The notes: generated by a model not told the origin, from the sequence alone. A stretch of 64,000 nucleotides of DNA from Setoptus koraiensis (GCA_048013815.1 CM106586.1:3658001-3722000); one strand, 5' to 3'; positions 5,012 to 55,252 are shown, counted from the stretch's first letter. Made by a program: numbers and translations.

Positions 5012-8000
5012 ATGAGCGCAGATTACGCCAGACAACAACCAAAAGTGATACACCAAAACAGCGACGCCAATAGTGACCAACAAACCCCAACTAGCACCCA
5101 AAAGGTTCCGCCATTTCACAGGCCGCCTCTGCCCTTCCCCCCAAAAGTGCCCAGACCGCCCCACCCCAACCGGCCGGCCGGTGGTGCGCGGGACCGGCCA
5201 TCTGGCGCCGTGTCCAGCCCGAGTCAGCCGGCATTCATCCAAACTAGTCCAATGGGCAGCAACCCGTGGGCCGCAACAACCGGCCCGACTGCAACCGGCG
5301 ACATGGCGGGCTCGCCGCCATCGCTTTCCACCGCCTCATCTACCGCCATAAACACACTACCAGATGTACAGCCCGATCTCTCCGGCTCGGATCCGATGCT
5401 CCAGCAACCCCCGCCGGCCTACAGTACCTCAATGCAATACCCTCACGGCGCGGAGCCCTCCTACACGGTGCCAACGATTCCTACAACGCAACAGTCGGCC
5501 GCAAGCGGCCCGTCATGTCCCGAGCTGGTCATTCATCAGATGCGCTGGCCGGCCACTTTAGCGGGCGAAACGCGCTACATCCAGTGTCCCGTGTACGCCT
5601 ACTACGATCACACTTCACGAGCCTCGTTCGAGTGCGTGTCCGTCGGCGGGGGCGGCAGCGGCGCGGCGCATTGGGCGCCCGCGGGACCCAACATGAGCAA
5701 GTGCGTGTCAAACTGGGTGCGAAACATTTATTTGCGCCTACAAGACGGCGAATCGTTGCCCGCCATCGCGGCCGAGCTTGCCCAGCGGACACACCCATCG
5801 GCGGCGGGCCCGGCCGCGCAGCACGGCGGTCATCAGCTGATGACGGGGGCGCCGCAAAGGCAGCAGCAGCAGCAGTTGCTGTTCGGCGAGGATCTCATGC
5901 AATTGGGAATGATTGTGCAGCAATTGGTGCAGCGGATGGACAATCAACTGAACAGCATCAGCGACGACAAACAGCGCCTAGTGTTCGTGCGCGAACTCGT
6001 CCAGGTAAGTGGCACCACGAGCGTGACAAAACAAACAATTTCTCGCTGTTAGGAGCGTTACGTAATCCAGTTGCGCCAATTCCGTGCCACTGGCCAGTAC
6101 GTGCAATGTCTTACGTAATCGCTCGGAATTGGCGCTGGCGCAGTGATTCGCGCCAGACGGTCCGAACAGTGGCGTCCGAATGCCGGACATTGGCCGTGTG
6201 CGTGGCCGTCGGAAGCGGCCGAGTGAGTCATAGAGGCCCATAATAGATTACATGTGTCACGAGCGGACATTACGACGCTCGTTGCGGCCGCAATTATTGG
6301 ACTAAAAAACGCAAAGGCAAAAATGGCACGAGATTTGGTTGCGGGCTGCGAGCCGCGAGTTGCGAGCCGCGAGTTGCGAGTTTTGAGCGCCGAACGAAGC
6401 CGAAACAATTATGAATGCGACCGCTCATGTGGAAGTTGTTTATGGACACGACAAAGGGATATTCGCGCCAGACATTTATTTGCCTTCGTTCGGCGGGGGC
6501 CCGCGAGGCCCGCTGGCCGGCGCGCAAACAAGCGAGGCCCGCTGACCGGCACAGCGCACAATGTTTGCCGACCAAGCGACGCTCGTCGGAGCTTTTGTGC
6601 AAAATTGAACCCTCGTGTGCCGACACGAGCGTTCAATTTTGCGAACAGCGGCTCATCATTTGCGCACGGTGCCCATTAGAATATTGCAACTGGACAATAT
6701 GCTGCGGCTGGCGGCGCCAATGTCGCGTTGACACTAATTAATATTGAGCCCTCTATCGACGGCCCCATAATGGCCCACGTTTATTTATGTGTAAGCTCAC
6801 TAAACGTCGGTGTGTGTTTACGGCGCACATTGGGTCGCAATTGGCGACCAAATATTATGTAATGTGCACGTGGAGCGGCCCTTCGTCGGCCAGGATTGAG
6901 TGCGTTCGAAGTTCGGAGTTCGAAGTTCGGAGTTCGAAGTTCGGAGTTCGAAGTTCGGAGTTAGAAGTTCGGAGTTCGATGTTCGAAGTTCGGGGGGCGC
7001 AAAATTGCATTCGAAAGCGACCCCACTGACCTTAATATACTCGCACTTATGCCAAACGCATTTTATACCGTTATTGCGCTTGTACACCGACGCCGACCGA
7101 TTATGTAAGCGGGCTAATGCATCCCGGTCGCACTGTCAAACGGGGGGACTCGGCGAGCGCTGACGCAACGTTGTGGGCCACGTACAACTTTTACGTGCCG
7201 CTGTGCTGTAACGTGCCGCTGTAACGTGCCGCTGCAACGTGCTGTAACGTGCTGTAACGTGCTGTAACGTGCTGTAACGTGCTGTAACGGGTGCAACGGC
7301 TGCATAGTGAAATTGTAAGAATTGGCTGACGGCCCGAAAGTCTCGAGCCGGCCCGCCATCGCGGCTCGGCCCGGCGGCGCCGCACAGCCTGTGCAAGTTG
7401 TCAGGGCCAGGCTGCAGTTGCACAGTGCAAGGCGCCGCTCAAACTTTGAGGCCCAACGGGTCGATTGAATAATAAGCCAGACAGTGCGCGAGTGGCGATA
7501 TTGCCGCAGCAAATCAATTAGCTGACCGCTCGGCGTGACCGCGTTGGCCCGAGCGGCCCAACAATCAGTGTCGAGGCTCTCGAGCGCGCGTCCAATTGAG
7601 AGTCGAATCGAGACTCTCGCGCGAGAGTCGAACTGAGAGTCGAATTGGGGCCTCGAAACGGTCAGTGCTATGTGTGCTCGAAATGGCTTGCTGTGGCCGA
7701 TCGAGCTGCTGGTGCCCATCGAGCGTCCGCTGCAGACCGGCAGTATGCAACGACCAATTTCCAGCAATTTGGCACCATTCCAGCCAATTGCAATTGCATC
7801 GGGCCGGCAGTTGCGTCGGGCCGGCAGTTGCGTCGGGCCGCCAATTGAACGGCTTGCAAGGAATCAATTTGACAACAATGTGACGCAGTGTGCGTATCGC
7901 TGGCCAAAGTGATTTCGCCAAAGTGATGTTTATATGTTATTTACATTGTATTGCAATGCAGTGCGTGAAATTGAATTGAGCGAGCCGGCAACACTTGGCG

Positions 8001-44194: not shown

Positions 44195-45022
44195 CTACTT
44201 TTTTTTGAATTTCGAAAATTGCAACAGAATGGCAGCTTCTATGTCTTCGGCTGTTTTTGTTTGGCCAAAATAATCAGCTAGGTTACCATTTGGATCAATT
44301 AAATATGATATTATAGTGTGATCTACTATGTAATCGTTGTCTTTATCCTTGGGACCGACACTGTAGTAGACCCTGTAGGCTCTTGTCGCCTTTTCCACTT
44401 GCTCTTTGGTGCCAGTTAGTCCAATGAATTTGGACGAGAACTCTGACAGGTATTTGGCCAAATTCTCTGGCGTGTCGCGTTCCGGATCAACAGAAATGAA
44501 TAAAGGTACTAGATCCACTTTAGAGCCTATTTTCTCAATCACTGTAGCCAATTTTTCTAGCTCCTCTGGGCAGATGTCGGGGCAGTTGGTGAAGCCAAAG
44601 TAAATGAGAATCCATTTTCCGGACCACTCTGATGACTTTCTGAGTTTATTCTGTGTGTCGACAAGTTCGAAATCACCTCCGATAGCTGGTTTCCCGAAAG
44701 AACGGGCCTTTTGCAAGGCTTGTTGCTTTAATTTTTGCTCTCTCAAATATAACGTGTATCCATAGAGGCCGGCGAGTAGGCCTCCACCAATGAGCAACGA
44801 CTTCCATGTGATAGGTCCACCTGTCTTCCAGCTAGAGCCAACAAATCTGCCCTTGAGTGATGGACGTTGTTTACTTGAGTCACAGAACGACCTCGAATTG
44901 TTGGGACACGATCTGACCCATGGAAATAAGACTAAATCCCTGTTGAGTAATGACTGATAACAACCACGAGTATCTGTTCTCTGCACAGTTAACTTTATAG
45001 CCTGCCTCGTGAAAGCAAGCAT
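44195..45022 (-). CDS. SCO1: SCO1/SCO2-family mitochondrial copper chaperone, 275 aa, intronless
   Basis: Copper motif YFGFTNCPDICPEEL, single TM (GPITWKSLLIGGGLLAGLYGY), IGGDFELVD, ISVDPERDT, YIVDHTIISYLIDP. Confidence 0.95.
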   Translation of the reverse strand: MLAFTRQAIKLTVQRTDTRGCYQSLLNRDLVLFPWVRSCPNNSRSFCDSSKQRPSLKGRFVGSSWKTGGPITWKSLLIGGGLLAGLYGYTLYLREQKLKQQALQKARSFGKPAIGGDFELVDTQNKLRKSSEWSGKWILIYFGFTNCPDICPEELEKLATVIEKIGSKVDLVPLFISVDPERDTPENLAKYLSEFSSKFIGLTGTKEQVEKATRAYRVYYSVGPKDKDNDYIVDHTIISYLIDPNGNLADYFGQTKTAEDIEAAILLQFSKFKKK

Positions 45023-45179
45023 AGTGGATAGGTCAAATGGGTGTCAATTTGATGTTGAAGATGTATTTTTATCTCACAGTCGACGATATTTGGATAGACT
45101 TATCAAGCATTTGTTGGGGCCCTTTCTCACTTGAGAATCTCATTTGACCACATGTGCCACAAATTCTTTGAGTTTGAAC

Positions 45180-46683: not shown

Positions 46684-47733
46684 TCATGATAGCTTTTTCA
46701 TCTTGGCTACAAAGAAACCGTCAGTGTTGTGCGTGTGCGGATAAAATCTTCTTGTCATAGACATTGTGGGATGAAAGTGAAGCCCTCTAAAATTCTTGAA
46801 GCCGGCTCTTCCAAATTCTAATCCAGTCTCAACAAGTTTAACTTTTCTTTTGCGGAGGGCGTATTCAATGACCGATTCGTTTTCTTCTACAAGAATGGAA
46901 CATGTGGAGTAAACAAGGTAACCACCTTTCTGTGATTTGGCGTCCAAACAATCAATAGCAGCAAGTAACAATTCCTTCTGCAGGTGACTACACCTTTTCA
47001 CATCTTTCCAGTCTTTCTCAGCCTTTACCGACGGATCCTTTATTGCCACCCCACTACCTGTACAAGGGGCATCTAGAAGCACACGATCGAATCCTGTCAT
47101 AATCTTGGGAAACTTTCGTCCGTCGTGACAACTGATAACGGTGTTGATAACCCCCAAACGATGGCAATTAGCCGAGACAGCTCTGCAACGCTCCCTGCTG
47201 ATGTCATTAGCAAATATAACACCTGTATTTTTCATCAATTGTGCAATGTGCGTAGTCTTACCGCCGGGGGCAGCTGAGAGATCGAGTATTCTATCGCCTG
47301 GTTGTGGCGCCAAGGCCATAACTGGTAGCAAAGATCCTGCTCCTTGTAATATGTAGTGGCCAGCTAAATAGGAAGAGGTCGCGCCAATAGGTACTGGTGA
47401 ATCATATACAATGAGTCCAACCTTAGACCATTCTACCGGATCAACATTCACGCCGAGTGCTATGAGCTCCTGAGCTAGTTCTTTACGTCTGGTCTTTAAA
47501 GTGTTAGTTCTGATTGTTACTGGTCGTTCGGTCTCACTAGCCTCGAGGAATTGCTTTAGTTCTTCTACTGGGAAGAGATTCATCACCAAGCGCATCATGT
47601 AGTCATTGTAACCGTATTTCCAGCAGAGTTCTTGCCTTAGCTTTGTCCGATCGGTGGTGGTGTCTTCAGAGTCCTCAGGATCGCTGCAGTCCGGTTCCGG
47701 CTCCTCGAACGTTTCATTCTCTGGGTCCATCAT
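46684..47733 (-). CDS. NOP2: NOP2/NSUN1 rRNA m5C methyltransferase core with an eIF3b-derived N-terminal 28 aa; 349 aa, intronless
   Basis: ERPVTIRTNTLK, GHYILQGAGSLLPV, RILDLSAAPGGKTTHIA, FDRVLLDAPCTG, LVYSTCS, RRFYPHTHNTDGFFVAK. N-terminus MMDPENETFEEPEPD... aligns with the eIF3b start at 53080. Confidence 0.93.
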   Translation of the reverse strand: MMDPENETFEEPEPDCSDPEDSEDTTTDRTKLRQELCWKYGYNDYMMRLVMNLFPVEELKQFLEASETERPVTIRTNTLKTRRKELAQELIALGVNVDPVEWSKVGLIVYDSPVPIGATSSYLAGHYILQGAGSLLPVMALAPQPGDRILDLSAAPGGKTTHIAQLMKNTGVIFANDISRERCRAVSANCHRLGVINTVISCHDGRKFPKIMTGFDRVLLDAPCTGSGVAIKDPSVKAEKDWKDVKRCSHLQKELLLAAIDCLDAKSQKGGYLVYSTCSILVEENESVIEYALRKRKVKLVETGLEFGRAGFKNFRGLHFHPTMSMTRRFYPHTHNTDGFFVAKMKKLS

Positions 47734-48562
47734 GATCTGTATGTGAGAAATAAATGATTCGTAATTGATAGTAATATCCTAATTAGTTATTTGGTGATTA
47801 TATCGGACTTGTTAATCATAAATGTAATGTAGTAACTAACAAACAACATATTTGCATGTCGCTGATGTTGTGGTATCGCGTAGATTCTTTTTTCGCGTGT
47901 GTCTGCCATGCTTTCGCTGTGTGCAAAATAGCGTTCGTAATGGCGCTAAATACGAATGATCAAGAAATTTTAGTGATCGGGGGAGGTATTCCTCCCACCT
48001 CCCGCTATATGGGCTTGGACCTCCCGCTTCCCACCTCCCCCTCCCAGTTGGTCTCCCTGTTGGAGAAAGCAAAAGAAACGATTGGCCAGCTCCGCGAGCT
48101 GTTATTCACATTCAGTGTTTATTTTGTGCAGTTCGGCCCGTAGTCGCGTGTCGACCAGTCTGTTTACATATTGCTTGCAAGATAAAAAAAATCTCATCTA
48201 CATTAGGCTCTCACTTATTACACCGATCCAATATGTTTGCCTTCTCGAAACAGGCCCTTAAGTTGGCCGTAATGAGGACAGAAGCTCGATGTCAGTCATT
48301 GCTCAATAAAGAATCGATCGCATCAGCTTGGGTGGGATCATATCGTATCAAAGACCCTGATAGTTACGTCAATACCTTCCCACAACCCCGCAGATGGCCG
48401 CGTTATAATGAGATCGTTCAACCACCCCAAACAGACCCAACTGAGGAGAGAAGACCTGCTACGTACTACCACTATCGATCAAATATTAAGTATTCACCCA
48501 AAAAGATGTGGTTCATTGTAAAATTCATTCGAGGAATGTCCGTCGACGAGGCGGTGAAGCAA
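47650..48562. repeat. Copy A of the inverted segmental duplication (eIF3b stub + bidirectional promoter + mRpL22 5' part)
   Basis: 47650-47968 aligns to the reverse complement of 52825-53163, and 48154-48562 to the reverse complement of 52371-52769. The central 185 bp (47969-48153) is unique to this copy. Confidence 0.95.
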
Positions 48563-48892
48563 TTATCATTTGTTGACAAGAAAGGTGCCCAGATCGCCAA
48601 AGAGACTCTCCTTGAAGCTCAAGCAATTGCTGTTAAGAAACACAATTTCGAGTTTAAATCAAACATGTGGATAGAAGAGGCATTGTGCGGAAAGGGCCTA
48701 GTCATCAAGGGAGTCAGAAAGCACGCTAAACAACACATTGGTATAATCAATTATTTTTATGTACATCTTTTGTTCAAATTGACCGAGGGACCTCCGCCTA
48801 GACATTATTATGAGCCACCAAAGGATGGAAACGATCTCTTGAAAGAGTACTTTGATAAACTAAGAAATAGAAAGATACCATTAGGTATTTAA
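48233..48892 (+). CDS. mRpL22: Mitochondrial ribosomal protein L22, 219 aa, intronless
   Basis: NIKYSPKKMWFIVKFIRGMSVDEAVKQLSFVDKKGA, HNFEFKSNMWI, KGVRKHAKQHIGIINYFYVHLLFKLTEGPPP; basic presequence-like N-terminus. Confidence 0.93.
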   Translation: MFAFSKQALKLAVMRTEARCQSLLNKESIASAWVGSYRIKDPDSYVNTFPQPRRWPRYNEIVQPPQTDPTEERRPATYYHYRSNIKYSPKKMWFIVKFIRGMSVDEAVKQLSFVDKKGAQIAKETLLEAQAIAVKKHNFEFKSNMWIEEALCGKGLVIKGVRKHAKQHIGIINYFYVHLLFKLTEGPPPRHYYEPPKDGNDLLKEYFDKLRNRKIPLGI

Positions 48893-49610
48893 CAAACGCG
48901 AGTGTTGCAATAAATCTCGAGTTTCTGAGAAACACATTTTTTCATATTTCGCATATTGATTGCCACATTTATCTTGTTAATAATCTCTCATTTTATTCAT
49001 TTCTTTCTAACTAAACATCAACTGCAAGACTTGTTGTTATTGCCAAAGTAACTTTTCAAGACAAAAATGCTACCTGTTTCAACATCTTTCTGCCTCCTTT
49101 TGATTAATTGAGATAAGCAGAGTATTGCACAATCAACATACGCTTTTCCTACATCATAGTTTTAATGTGTACATTCTCTCTGCTGATACCACAGAACCAG
49201 CTTGAAGTATTTTACGTACCATTCAAAAAGTTGTTGATTAAATAATGACATAGTTGATTTGTTTTCATCCATCTCTTTATCCTAGCTTTAAGGTGCTAAT
49301 GTATTTTTAACAGATAGCTGATAACTATCATGAGACTTCGACGAGACACGTACAAAACTAGAATGTAACGAAAGTCATAGACTACTAACATAATGATTGC
49401 ACTATCTACGTAACATGTATTCTAACTTACCACCTTAAGAGGCTTTGCTAAAAAATCTAACTTTTCTATCAAACTTGTTACAAACACGATTCAACGTCTT
49501 TCGAAAGTTCTGTGCGATAATCATGCATATATCTTTCGTACAAAAGAGTTAAACAATAGTCATTGTTACATTATCTTTGGAGAAGCATCGCAATTTAAAA
49601 ATTTGTCAAA

Positions 49611-50983
49611 ATGAATCGACTAGTTATACTTTGTGCAATAGTTTCAATCATACCTACAGTTTTTTTGGAGGCCCAAGAGACTTTTGTAAGTATAATATAG
49701 CAATTATAGACCGAACTTCCTTATTTTGTTCCAATTCAAACAACTAATTTTTGTTACATTCACCCACTAATCCGAAGAGCGGTGATGAGGATGTTAATTT
49801 AAATAATGAAATTAGTCCCCGCGATGCCTTTGTCCCTGAAAAGTCCGAGCTGTACCGATTCAGTCGTTCATCTGATTACCAAGTATTTGAGCCACAACAG
49901 AGACTAGAGGCCTCATCAGGGCATGGCTCTTCTAGGCAAAGTGAGGGTTCTGCCTCATCGAGTCGCCTTCTATCCTCCGCATCCAGTGACGAATCATCTT
50001 CATCATCGTCGTCATCATCTCAATCATCTCAAACAACAACTACAACTACCACCACTACACAACAGCAACCTCAAGTGACTGCGAGATTGCAAGAGATCAG
50101 AGTGCATACGATACCTCATTCGCAAGCCATACATTATCCTGGCTTTATAGTGGTACCACAAAGTAGTGTTATTAGACAGGAAGCATCTAATGAAGGATCA
50201 AAATCAGCTAGGATTGAGGAGCAGTCGGAGACCTCTCAACAATCGTCGTCTAGCAAGAACAGTGAAGCTGAGACTGTATCAGTGGTACAACCGCCGGCAG
50301 CCACAACTTTCGTGATCAAGCCATCACTTGCTCCAGTTGGCCCCGATTGTGTTCTACATAGACTAATCGTAGAGCGACCTGTGACAGATTCTTTAGTTAT
50401 CTCTGTTCCAAACACAATAAATATCAGCAAGTCGTCATCAAGCTCCTCCTCATCATCTGCACGCATCACCGATGTGACACCTGCTGTTGAACCGCCGGCA
50501 GTCGTTCCACCAGTGTGTTGTTTTGTCAAGAAAACAACTCCATTGGCAAGATTGGTTGTACCACCGCCACCACCACAACCTTCTGGAAGCTTGAAAGAAG
50601 AACATTTCCACCAAGAAAGTAGATCAAGTCGCGAGGAAACACACGGTTTGGGTTCATCTTCCGTATCATCTTCATCTTCTTCATCATCGTCGTCATCTTC
50701 TAAGACTCAGCAAAAGTCTACAGAGACTTCGGCCGCCATCCATCTTGCACCAGTGCCGGCCCCAATCATTGTAGCTGAGGCTCCGAAGCCTGTTGTATTG
50801 GCCGCTATAAAAGCAATACCTGTGCAATCGAACGATCATTACTCAGTAAATGTTGATCATCACTACTCTGGACCAAACGTCAAGTATGGTTATTCAATTA
50901 AGCAATCATCTTCAGAACAACCGAAAATTGACAGCGCTAAATTGATAGCTGGAGACCGCGTTCTATATTTCAGCAAGAAATAA
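49611..50983 (+). CDS. Secreted Ser/Thr/Pro-rich low-complexity protein of unknown function (possibly cuticular), 426 aa
   Basis: Exon 1 49611-49685 encodes a signal peptide (MNRLVILCAIVSIIPTVFLEA) and ends at gtaagt; acceptor AG at 49776-49777 is in frame with the long ORF to 50983 (1281 nt total). Poly-Ser and poly-Thr tracts, PAPIIV/APKPVV segments. Confidence 0.75.
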
Positions 50984-51196
50984 TCAATTTCAAGCATATC
51001 AAATCTTGGCCTCTGTTGCAACGTAATCATCATTCGCAGTAACATTTAACTATATTATGTATTATGCATGTTTGTGTATATCTAAATGAGATCACATTGA
51101 ACTGAGTTTGATAGGTTACGAACATCATTAATAAAGTGTCAGGATTTTAACCTAATATTTTTCTTTTGTACAAAGTATCAACTATGCTTGAATAAA

Positions 51197-52691
51197 TCAC
51201 AGTACTTCGAGATCGACATGTTTCACCCTAGGATGAGTTCGCTATTCATTTGACAGAGTTCATAATTAGTAGGTGAAAAGAAGAGGAATAGAAACAAATT
51301 GTGGAATGAAAGTTAGTTTGAGTGCCATCAGGTGACAAAGTTACTATATTGTAGCAATAGATACTTACTCTCAATTCCTTTTCGATACGGTCGACTTCAG
51401 CGCCTAGTGTATCTACAACATTTTCACCGTGCTTGATAACGAATTTCGCAGCGTCTTTCTCATCCTTGATAAGTCTAATCTCATCAAGGAGTGCACCTTT
51501 ATCAATCTTTTCGATATATCGCTTGGATAATTCACGACCATCAACATCAACCTCAGCTTTATATCTGATAACTCCATTTCCGAGATCTGTTGCTTTCACA
51601 TCATGTATAGCCCGTATGATAACATCTTTTTCTATAATTTGATTGATGGCATTCAATGTATCACTTGGTATAGAACGACCTACCAATGCAACGGTATTTT
51701 TCTTGATAATGAACGTGGCTACTCCTCCTAATAGACTTCCGATGAGTATTGATCCCACGGCATCAAATACGTGGGAACCATAATAAGACGTAAGGGCCAT
51801 GCACGATGCTGCGATGCCGATGCCCAAAACAGCTGCAACGTCTTCCAGTAACACAACTATAACTCCGGGATCTCTATTTCTGGCTATGTAGTCTTTCATG
51901 CTGATTTTGGAATTCCTCGCCCCTATGTTGAGAGCTCTTACTGCCATAAATAAAGTAGCACTTTCGGAAATCAACGAAAATGCGAGTATTGCATACGCCC
52001 ATGATGGAGAGCAAGTCAAGTCAGGTTGCAGCAATCCCTCAATCCCATGATATACCGACAGACCACAACCAACACAGAATATTCCAACACCTGATATGAG
52101 AGGTGCTATATAACGCATTGGATGATAACCATAAGGGTGATCAGGGGTAGGACTCTGCAAGGATTTTCGGATGCCTACAGCTAATATCAATTGATTGGCT
52201 GTGTCGGCGAAAGAATGAATGGCTTCGGCGAATAAAGAATGAGATCCAGTGTAGAACCAGGCTCCAGATTTTGCGACGAAGTTAGCAAAATTTATAATCA
52301 CAGCACCCCAAACAACTCGACTAGAACTTCTAAGTGTCTCCTCTTCTTCTTTGCTCTCAATGGAAGACGATTGCCTTATCGCCTCATCGATGGGCATTCC
52401 ACGAATGAATCTATCTATGTGCCACATCTTCTCTGGTGAGTTCGGTCGATATTTACGATATGCTGCGGATCCTCTCGCCTCGTGTGGCTCAACCTTGGGT
52501 GTTTGAATTATCTCATTATAATGTGGACGTCTGCGAGGTCTCGGCAGCCAATTGTTGTAAATATCAGGATCTTTAATTAAATATGATCCCACCCAAGCTG
52601 ATGCAACTGTGTTATTGTTAAGTGACGACTGACTGCAAGCTTCTGTCCTCATCACAGCCAACTTGAGGGCCTGTTTAGAAAAGGCAAACAT
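51197..52691 (-). CDS. SLC30A9: SLC30A9/ZnT9 mitochondrial zinc transporter with an mRpL22-derived N-terminus; 455 aa
   Basis: Exon 1 52691-51369, 127-nt intron (gtaagt...aatag), exon 2 51241-51197 encoding RTHPRVKHVDLEVL*. Motifs AWFYTGSHSLFAEAIHSFADTANQ, HPYGYH, VVLLEDVAAV, IHDVKATD, YKAEVDVDG, DTLGAEVDRIEKEL. ATG at 52691 preferred over the ORF-track start at 52916. Confidence 0.92.
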
Positions 52692-53163
52692 ATTGGATCG
52701 GTGTAATAAGTGAGAGCCTAATGTAGAAGAGATTTTTTTGTCTTGCAAGCAATACGTAAATAGACTGGTTAAAAATCTATTGAGGCACTTTCTATTTGTT
52801 GCTAACATATGATTCCTGAATGTCATTTCTTGGTCATTCGTATTTAGCGCCATTACGAAGGCTACTCTGCGCACAGCGGAAAGCATGACAGACAGACACA
52901 CGCAAAAAAAATGCATATACGCGAAACTACCGCTACTAAACCATCGGCGGTATGCAAATATATTGTTTGTTTGTTATTACACTACATTTATGACTAACAA
53001 GTCCAATATAATCAATTCTAATTTAACTAAATAGGATATTACTATCAATCAAGAATCATTTATTTCTTACATACAGATCATGATAGACCGAGAGAATGGA
53101 ATTTACGAGGAGCCGGAACCGGACTTCAACGATCCGGAGAACTTTGAAGACACCATAACCGAT
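52371..53163. repeat. Copy B of the inverted segmental duplication
   Basis: Reverse complement shares catgatctgtatgt.agaaataaatgattc, gtaatggcgctaaatacgaatga.caagaaat and tctacattaggctctcacttattacaccgatccaatatgtttgcctt with copy A; central 55 bp (52770-52824) differs. Confidence 0.95.
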
Positions 53164-55252
53164 CAGGAACTTCTGGGTGATCTCTTAAAGCAGAAGCCTC
53201 AAAAATATGACGGCCTTTCAGCGTCCATTGTCATAGACGGTCTTCCTCCAGTTGGTCCAGATAAATTGGAAAAGCTCAAAGGTGTTATAAACAAATTAGT
53301 GACAAAATATGGTACACCTGTCACTACTGACTACCCCTTAGATGACAACGGCAATACTAAAGGGTAAGTATTTTTTAACTGTTGTCATTTGCTATAAGGT
53401 CTTCTAATGCTTCTAGTTGTATTAATAAGAGAATCTTCCTATACTTCTTGTCTGTTCCACTCTTCACAATAGATTCCTATTTGTCGAATTTGAGAACGCC
53501 ACACAAGCCATGGCTGCCGTCAAAGGACTTGAGAGGGGTCACCGTCTTGATAAGCAACATAAATTACAAGTCAATGCTTTCCATGATATCTCTAAATATT
53601 CAAATCTAACCAAGAATTGGACCCAGCCAAAACCACAGGCTTATGTTGACAGAGGAAATCTTAGATCTTGGCTCTTGGAACCAAACTGCTATGATCAGTA
53701 TGGTGTGGTCCACAACGGTGGCATGTCCACTAGTATTTATTTGAACACAAATCCAGAGCCGACAGTGATTAAAACGCGTGAATTATGGACAGAATCTATC
53801 ATCTGTTGGTCACCCAATGGTACATATCTAGCTACATGCCATGCCAAAGGTATCGCCTTATGGGCTGGAGCGGACTTTGGCTGCAAAATACAAAAATTTG
53901 TACATGAAGATGTCAACTTTTTAGACTTCTCACCTAGCGAGCAATACTTGGTTACATTCAGCCCAAATCTGGCTCAGCAGGGAGACCAGCATGCTATAAT
54001 TATTTGGGAGATAAGATCTGGAGCCAAAAAACGTTGGTTCCCAGTAGATGAGGCTCAATGCCCTTGGCCTCTATTTAGGTGGTCCCACGATGATAAATTC
54101 TTCGCCAAGATGAATCAAGATTCGTTGAGTGTTTATTCAGTGAACGAAACACCACCATTCGGTTTATTAGACAAAAAGTCTATCAAAATTAATGGCATCA
54201 AGGGTTTCACTTGGTCTCCAACTGACAACATACTAGCGTACTGGGTAGCCGAAGACCAAAATGTTCCAGCTCGTGTAACTTTAATGGATATGCCTTCGAA
54301 GACAGAACTAAGATCCAAAAATTTATTCAACGTTGCAGATTGTAAGATGTACTGGCAAAAACATGGAGATTATTTATGCGTTCAAGTTCAACGTTATGCC
54401 AAAGCCAGAAAAGAGAAGAACGAGTGGAAATACAGTGGCCTCTACTACAACTATGAAATATTCTATTTAAGAGCCAAGTTGGTACCTGTTGATAGCTTCG
54501 AAATCAAGGAAATTGTGGTCTCCTTTGCATGGGAACCAATCGGCAACAAATTTGGTATTATAGTAGGAGAAACAGCTCAACACTCTGTTTTATTCTATGA
54601 AATTAAAGGTGACAAAGTAGAATTAGTAAAGAGATTCGAAAACAAGACCTGCAATCAGTTGTTTTGGTCACCCGCCGGCCAATTTGTCCTTCTTGCAAGT
54701 CCCCGCGGAGGTATGAACCGACAACTTGAATGGATTGATACATCTGATATGACTGTCACAGCAAAGAATGAGCACTTCATGATGACTGATGTCGAATGGG
54801 ATCCAACAGGACGCTACGTAACTACGATGGTCAGTTATTGGGAACACAAAGCTGATAACTCTTATTGGCTCTGGTCGTTCAATGGTCGATTAATACGAAA
54901 GCACAACCTAGAGGGCTTTTGTCAGTTACTGTGGCGTCCTAGGCCGCCCACCTTACTATCAGCAGAAAAGATTGCTGAGATAAAGAAGAACCTAAAGAAT
55001 TACTCCAATCAATTTGACCTCAAGGATAAAGCAGCGAGCAACCAAGTTTCACGGACCATTTTGGAGAAGAGGAAGAAACTGGTTAGTGAATTCGAGGCCT
55101 ATCGCCAAAGTAAGAGGCAAGCCTTTGAAGCTATGGTTGCAGAGCTACGAAGCATGAGGAACGGAAAGTTATTGAGACCCGACGATGAAGATATTGTACA
55201 GGAAGAAGTTATAGAATTATTTGTAAAAGAGGAAACGCTACCCGTCAATTGA
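53080..55252 (+). CDS. eIF3b: Eukaryotic translation initiation factor 3 subunit B (RRM plus beta-propeller), 687 aa
   Basis: Exons 53080-53363 and 53473-55252 (phase-2 GT-AG; 2064 nt). EEPEPDFNDP...ELLGDLL, IVIDGLPPVG, TKG|FLFVEF (RNP1), LDKQH, WSPNGTYLAT, WSHDDKFFA, EWDPTGRYV, LWRPRPPTLL. Probable 5' intron 52950-53076; an in-frame ATG at 52911 could add 14 aa. Confidence 0.96.

Follow-up and report, generated by a model that had tools for sequence, protein, structure and literature searches.

The SLC30A9/ZnT9 gene of Setoptus koraiensis begins with a piece of another mitochondrial protein gene, mRpL22 (uL22m). The whole is best explained by an in-frame capture of the mRpL22 5' end by ZnT9, with the borrowed leader serving as presequence, a reading to which we give a probability of about 0.7. 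The window analysed is a stretch of 64,000 nucleotides (GCA_048013815.1 CM106586.1:3658001-3722000), and all positions are counted from its first letter. The chimera is a real, selected gene, and presequence capture by partial duplication is already known. The parts of the gene and its donor are as follows.

52692-52769, minus strand: copied mRpL22 5'UTR ahead of the ZnT9 start codon, about 95% identical to 48154-48232.
52371-52691, minus strand: mRpL22-derived head of ZnT9, codons 1-107, from tblastn to 48233-48610, codon alignment, a partial Pfam match and dN/dS against the related contig L009.
52317-52370, minus strand: junction and native ZnT9 segment before TM1 (SSSIES-KEEEETLRSSSR), placed where the mRpL22 DNA similarity ends, at 52370.
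51369-52316, minus strand: transmembrane and C-terminal domains of ZnT9 (remainder of exon 1), from Pfam, 50-60% identity to named arthropod SLC30A9 proteins, pLDDT and dN/dS.
51242-51368, minus strand: ZnT9 intron of 127 nt, GT..AG, exactly skipped by an RNA contig of run X4.
51197-51241, minus strand: last ZnT9 exon of 15 codons (RTHPRVKHVDLEVL, stop), which the X4 RNA contig links to exon 1.
48233-48892, plus strand: donor mRpL22 (uL22m), a single exon of 219 aa, from Pfam Ribosomal_L22 (E 1e-18), orthologues and an RNA contig.

The minus strand has a single long ORF (52916-51246) at the ZnT9 locus. The ATG at 52691 opens the reading MFAFSKQ..., exon 1 runs on to the intron with its donor GT at 51368, and splicing at 51242-51368 restores the C-terminal end HVDLEVL seen in orthologues, giving a product of 455 residues. 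The head is made up of presequence-like residues 1 to about 20, the N-terminal extension of uL22m and the first strand and helix of the L22 fold. Downstream of it the frame enters SSSIESKEEEETLRSSSRVVWGAVIINF without a stop, as an earlier note on this DNA had described, and continues into the Cation_efflux domain (PF01545, E 8.1e-34, residues 130-337, profile positions 4-198 of 198). The expectation that a profile scan would find both domains in one ORF held for the transporter and in part for the ribosomal domain: Ribosomal_L22 (PF00237) matches residues 78-114 over profile positions 2-38 of 104 with 19.7 bits, below the Pfam gathering cut-off of 28, whereas the donor gene reaches 67.8 bits.

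The transporter core of the chimera is intact. Its named best matches are all arthropod SLC30A9/ZnT9 proteins, with 45-62% identity, and the TM2 motif HxxxD reads HSFAD and the TM5 motif V/IxxxD, which ZnT9 has instead of HxxxD (PMC11335279), reads VLLED by pattern inspection of the translation rather than by alignment to the human protein. Like canonical ZnT9 of human, fly (ZnT49B) and worm, which are mitochondrial proteins with predicted presequences (PMC11335279), it combines a cation-efflux core and a TM2 H-x-x-x-D with a ZnT9-type C-terminal domain ending in HVDLE(V/I)L, and a mitochondrial presequence is expected. It differs from them in that the NF[IV]T...RRSP block is absent, as in all eriophyoid orthologues, and in that leader and N-terminal tail come from uL22m. 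The first 107 residues are homologous to uL22m (presequence, mitochondrion-specific N-terminal extension, strand 1 and helix 1), and several uL22m-invariant residues are replaced. Two thirds of the L22 domain are missing, and the chimera cannot be a ribosomal protein.

A tblastn search of the window with the first 125 residues of the chimera found one other place, 48233-48610 on the plus strand, with 60% identity over 126 columns (E 4.8e-44), so that the similarity first seen by eye is significant in a formal pairwise alignment. In a global codon alignment 71 of 107 residues and 236 of 321 bases are identical between head and mRpL22, with one indel, a 9-bp (3-codon) in-frame deletion that sets the 107 head residues against the first 110 of mRpL22; the hand count of 71 identities with a three-residue deletion is thereby borne out. 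The DNA similarity ends at 52370 in the head and at 48563 in the parent, which makes the head coordinates of the earlier note accurate to the base.

The direction of transfer can be read from the uL22m orthologues. The mRpL22 of the window is 59-72% identical to those of other eriophyoids, the best named relative being that of the eriophyoid mite Fragariocoptes setiger (72%), and about 45 further relatives were obtained from sequencing-run and metagenome assemblies. The N-terminal region of mRpL22 is conserved from about residue 25 (LLNK..A.AWVGSY..., FP.P.RWPRYNE, SPKKMW, DEA.KQ), while the first 20 residues or so vary across species. The motifs conserved over residues 25-110 in 43 eriophyoid uL22m orthologues are carried by the ZnT9 head, and mRpL22 is therefore the donor and not the reverse. 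At 48 positions the residue is conserved in at least 80% of the 43 orthologues; 46 of these are retained in the parent, 33 in the window head and 37 in the head of L009, and nine are altered in both heads, with the same replacement residue at six. Parent and head are separated by an omega of 0.22 with dS near 1, and the duplication is therefore old. Recent gene conversion was considered for the identical first 18 residues of parent and head and was rejected, with 6 synonymous differences in 20 codons.

The 5'UTRs show another pattern. Those of mRpL22 (48154-48232) and of the chimera (52769-52692), about 80 nt each, are about 95% identical next to synonymous sites that are near saturation. Both window copies read ...TTACACC... 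where L009, a second related sequence (L001) and the copy at SCO1 read ...TTGACC.... Gene conversion is a likely cause of the 5'UTR similarity; in the sequences compared the pattern suggests a short conversion tract between the two copies in this lineage, or else a regulatory element common to both.

No other L22-headed fusion was found in a search of 5.8 billion proteins with the head alone (candidates of 243-772 aa, none at E 0.01). Against a representative library of 1.84 billion proteins the 107-aa head retrieved one eriophyoid uL22m and no other L22-headed protein. Two repeat proteins matched by the 107-aa head (P0242 and P0243) were rejected as compositional false positives.

The earlier note had also connected the capture of the leader with the loss of the XPA-like N-terminal domain of ZnT9. 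The domain is indeed not visible at the locus, as tblastn of the Limulus and Halotydeus ZnT9 N-terminal domains against the window gave nothing below E 0.7. This null result is uninformative on a lost exon, because the eriophyoid orthologues are without the domain too: the motif pair NF[IV]T and RRSP is present in 77 of 89 other arthropod ZnT9s and in 0 of 31 from the eriophyoid clade. The connection thus fails, since absence from 31 of 31 orthologues means that the loss predates the head swap and is independent of the capture. Among the orthologues compared, the missing block is a clade-wide loss and no argument against ZnT9 orthology.

The native N-terminal regions of eriophyoid ZnT9 are poorly conserved and comprise 26-163 residues before the motif EEE.LRSS.RVVW, which in the form EEE.LRSS(G/S)RVVW is common to the pre-TM1 segment of all eriophyoid orthologues. 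Judged from these regions, what the mRpL22 piece took the place of is a short, variable native leader and not the XPA-like domain. Three orthologues (P0004, P0009 and P0021) are single ORFs through to HVDLEVL, and the junction is therefore an in-frame exonic fusion rather than exon shuffling at an old intron. One subgroup of the eriophyoid orthologues (P0002-P0031) has a common motif, KR..FP.SY.PY.R, in the N-terminal region.

The fusion junction is common to three related species. An exact match of the window ORF is absent from the protein collection; the best ZnT9 match, however, belongs to a 90%-identity cluster that includes P0241, an uninterrupted ORF of 491 aa that starts MFAFTKQ and has precomputed Pfam matches to Ribosomal_L22 (faint) and Cation_efflux. 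The 6-kb contig encoding it, L009, is 86% identical in DNA to window positions 56239-50395 and collinear with them in gene order: eIF3b, the divergent head-ZnT9 gene and then a serine-rich gene. The metagenome scaffold L001, about 82% identical, has the same junction, with a 10-N scaffold gap within the head. Both retain the three codons deleted in the head, so the deletion is specific to the window lineage. DNA contigs of three sequencing runs span 48214-52710 without differences; two of these (X2 and X3) are apparently a single data set deposited twice. With difference-free contigs and the junction present in two other species, the sequence is not an assembly artefact. Although listed under different organism and study codes, runs X2 and X3 agree in every contig, depth and size and therefore lend no independent support to each other.

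The start codon is conserved. In L009 and L001 the frame is closed by stops 5-6 codons before the ATG, and the sequence context of the ATG matches that of the parent. An in-frame extension of 75 codons upstream of the ATG (to 52916) was rejected because of these stops: the extension in the window is fortuitous, and MFAF... is the conserved start.

Between the window and L009 the head (codons 1-107) has dN 0.113, dS 0.556 and omega 0.20, and the core (codons 125-441) dN 0.018, dS 0.586 and omega 0.031 (Nei-Gojobori). For the head, neutrality is rejected (binomial p 1.4e-6); the difference from the core is likewise significant (Fisher p 9e-7), nonsynonymous change being about 7 times faster in the head. 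As dS of the head equals that of the core, what is constrained is the protein rather than the DNA. In the comparison with L001 the omega of the head was 0.08 over 70 codons. Among simulated neutral copies the frame stayed open in 1.7% at the observed substitution level and in 9% with half the changes. The view that the preserved frame is a sign of selection for translation is upheld by these figures. The codon comparisons show a head under purifying selection at the protein level, looser than that of the core, and indicate that it is translated.

The head and its upstream region form part of an inverted duplication of about 0.9 kb, which comprises the first 28 codons of eIF3b, the intergenic promoter, the mRpL22 5'UTR and 107-110 codons of mRpL22. 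A further, older copy of the leader lies nearby.

47649-48563, no strand assigned: copy A of the inverted duplication, with an eIF3b-derived stub heading a NOP2-like gene, the promoter and the native mRpL22 5' end, from blastn and RNA contigs at 47500-47846 and 48149-48895.
52370-53164, no strand assigned: copy B, with the mRpL22 head, the intergenic promoter and the native first 28 codons of eIF3b, from blastn.
44943-45074, minus strand: older third copy of the mRpL22 5'UTR and leader, heading SCO1 (CDS 44195-45022), from blastp and DNA alignment.

In blastn copies A and B align at 47649-47968 / 53164-52825 with 82% identity and at 48154-48563 / 52769-52370 with 76%. They flank mRpL22, the serine-rich gene and the body of ZnT9; complete mRpL22 lies at the copy A end and complete eIF3b at the copy B end. 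One distant relative has a linked group of eIF3b, a Ribosomal_S2 gene, mRpL22 and the serine-rich gene, and in three other distant eriophyoids ZnT9 stands beside CAP and a small LYR-like gene, not eIF3b, which indicates that ZnT9 was relocated in the window lineage. A single inversion was tested by synteny, and the ancestral order with ZnT9 opposite NOP2 was not recovered in the available distant relatives. From the arrangement of the copies we infer that an inversion cut the eIF3b/mRpL22 promoter by a staggered break and so left the inverted duplication.

In Drosophila, inverted duplications at inversion breakpoints result from staggered breaks and sometimes give rise to chimeric genes (PMC1885836). 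The present case is similar in that two inverted copies flank a segment and the full genes of the original divergent pair lie at different ends. It differs in that both stubs head other genes (ZnT9 and NOP2-like), which requires that these lost their own 5' ends.

The start of SCO1, MLAFTRQAIKLTVQRTDTRGCYQSLLNRD, matches the first 36 or so codons of mRpL22 (blastp E 8e-8), a score that none of 20000 shuffles reached. At the DNA level this copy has 68% identity across 134 nt (window E value 1.5e-6), and SCO1 itself is identified by Pfam SCO1-SenC (E 4e-47). With this copy, three mitochondrial genes within 8 kb have one leader.

The proposed sequence of events is as follows. A partial duplication would have copied the 5' end of mRpL22, that is the promoter shared with eIF3b, the 5'UTR, the start codon and 107-110 codons, most likely together with the inversion that left 47649-48563 / 53164-52370. 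The copy would have joined ZnT9 in frame, within the exon, just upstream of EEE.LRSS.RVVW before TM1, and replaced the short, variable native leader. Since then the copied promoter would drive ZnT9, with translation beginning at the mRpL22 ATG at 52691. The stretch of residues 1 to about 16-20 would act as a matrix-targeting presequence through which the protein is imported into mitochondria. The next 85 or so residues (uL22m N-terminal extension, L22 strand 1 and helix 1), too little for the L22 domain to fold, may form a mostly disordered tail on the matrix side, the last helix of which would merge with the helix before TM1.

Composition and structure prediction are consistent with this. Residues 1-16 include three basic and no acidic residues, the first acidic residue being E17, and the first 20 residues have a net charge of +2 and a hydrophobic moment of 0.40, modest values from crude composition measures. 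AF2 places a helix at residues 5-14, gives the head a pLDDT of 39-56 with no packed fold, and joins the remnant of L22 helix 1 to TM1 in one helix (residues 101-148), with the core above 90. The N-terminus of the head thus looks like a presequence, and in the model the head is probably a borrowed presequence, by which the protein would be imported, followed by a mostly disordered matrix-side tail.

RNA contigs of the one RNA run (X4) cover ZnT9 at 51164-51781 only, with depth 1-3. At this depth the run has no contig over 51834-52818 and thus none over the head, whose transcription is predicted. The mRpL22 RNA contig is unspliced and runs over 48149-48895; by homology with its start at 48149 the ZnT9 transcription start would be near 52774.

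The alternatives concern the status of the gene, the role of the foreign residues and the presence of the head in the protein. The chimera may be translated but be a spare, sub- or neofunctionalised paralogue, and not the only mitochondrial zinc exporter of the cell; a canonical native-leader ZnT9 would then lie elsewhere, perhaps next to CAP and the LYR-protein gene, its position in the three more distant eriophyoids. ZnT9s 77-78% identical to the query do occur in other samples (P0034-P0036), but these samples are different ones and the proteins look like those of other species, and the core omega of 0.03 is as expected of a sole essential copy. We regard a spare paralogue as unlikely.

The residues behind the presequence could have a role of their own. 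That the uL22m extension and L22 fragment bind mitoribosomal partners in the matrix, or form a new regulatory N-terminal domain in place of the lost ancestral one, would agree with the 26 of 30 identical residues at 78-107 between window and L009, with the omega of about 0.24 in the post-presequence part, lower than a pure spacer needs, and with the nine conserved positions changed in both heads, six identically, and then kept. It is very unlikely given the low pLDDT and unpacked fold of the head, the presence of 37 of 104 L22 profile positions and the loss of about a quarter of the uL22m-conserved residues, and N-terminal regions with an influence on import efficiency commonly have an omega of about 0.2. 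A wider version, likewise very unlikely though a little less so, is that these 85 or so residues are a separately selected matrix module (a mitoribosome-biogenesis contact or a regulatory N-terminal domain) and that, with SCO1, the mRpL22 5' cassette is a reusable one. The cassette of promoter, UTR and leader would in that event co-regulate and co-target several mitochondrial genes in the lineage, and the partner contacts of the module would place a zinc exporter beside mitoribosome biogenesis.

That the head is a decaying leader or promoter remnant outside the protein, which would start downstream (Met 89 or 99) or from an upstream exon spliced near 52355, could be drawn from the gap in the X4 RNA contigs, from the gene caller's start of the L001 orthologue (P0001) at MPIDEAIRQ, though this follows the scaffold gap, and from a pyrimidine-rich stretch ending in AG that inspection of the sequence places at the junction, but is highly improbable because omega is 0.20 with dS undiminished relative to the core, because the frame is open in three species with the sole indel in frame, which few neutral copies would achieve, because a start at residue 99 would leave an acidic N-terminus (net charge -5 over the next 20 residues) only about 25 residues before TM1, unlike every orthologue, and because the space upstream is occupied by eIF3b, whose RNA contig begins at 52947.

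Capture of the mRpL22 5' end by ZnT9 has its closest parallels in plants. The usual view of mitochondrial presequences is that they arise or drift where they stand, and the documented leader captures by DNA duplication are mainly in plant genes newly transferred from the organelle. Examples mentioned in a passage of PMC2631504, citing Kadowaki et al. 1996, are rice rps11-1 from atp2, Arabidopsis sdh3 from hsp70 and carrot rps10 from hsp22. As in these, the DNA for the N-terminal targeting part of one nuclear-encoded mitochondrial protein was duplicated and joined in frame to the gene of a second mitochondrial protein, and the donor remained intact. Unlike the plant recipients, which were newly derived from the organelle and without a signal, ZnT9 is an old nuclear animal gene that had a leader, so that a signal was replaced. 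The ZnT9 copy further differs in bringing about 85 mature donor residues, the 5'UTR and a bidirectional promoter, and the mRpL22 leader was captured twice, by ZnT9 and by SCO1.

An old, essential animal transporter has thus had its leader swapped for that of a ribosomal protein, together with the donor promoter and 5'UTR. The gall-mite ZnT9 would be a clean animal example of one mitochondrial protein taking the targeting label of another, and the fusion has been retained over a synonymous divergence of at least about 0.6 in three species. As a natural swap experiment it suggests that a uL22m leader and about 85 foreign residues are compatible with the insertion of a six-helix inner-membrane transporter. 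SCO1 as the older and ZnT9 as the younger capture make up a dated series in which the reshaping of captured leaders can be studied. The loss of the ZnT9 N-terminal domain is a separate trait of the whole eriophyoid clade and is notable for ZnT9 biology.

Some further features of the neighbourhood were recorded. The NOP2-like methyltransferase gene (46684-47733, minus strand) starts with the first 28 codons of eIF3b (47650-47733), and an X4 RNA contig runs unbroken over 47500-47846, which shows that the eIF3b-derived stub is transcribed with it. In each copy of the inverted duplication the 5' ends of eIF3b and mRpL22 are separated by a promoter of about 0.4-0.5 kb only; in a distant eriophyoid (L002) a Ribosomal_S2-domain gene lies between the two, at 6571-7263. 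The segment 47968-48154 of copy A has 186 bp, against 56 bp in copy B. There the DNA contigs of all runs break, the depth of run X1 rises about threefold and the loose ends are CCTCCCGCCTCCCGG-like repeats; a small dispersed repeat was probably inserted in the copy A promoter. The Ser/Thr-rich gene between mRpL22 and ZnT9 (49539-51142, plus strand, ORF 49751-50983) is expressed and has no Pfam match. An RNA contig bears out its 92-nt intron at 49686-49777, two low-complexity spots near 50000 and 50680 have very high contig depth, and the gene adjoins mRpL22 in L002 too, with 44% identity.
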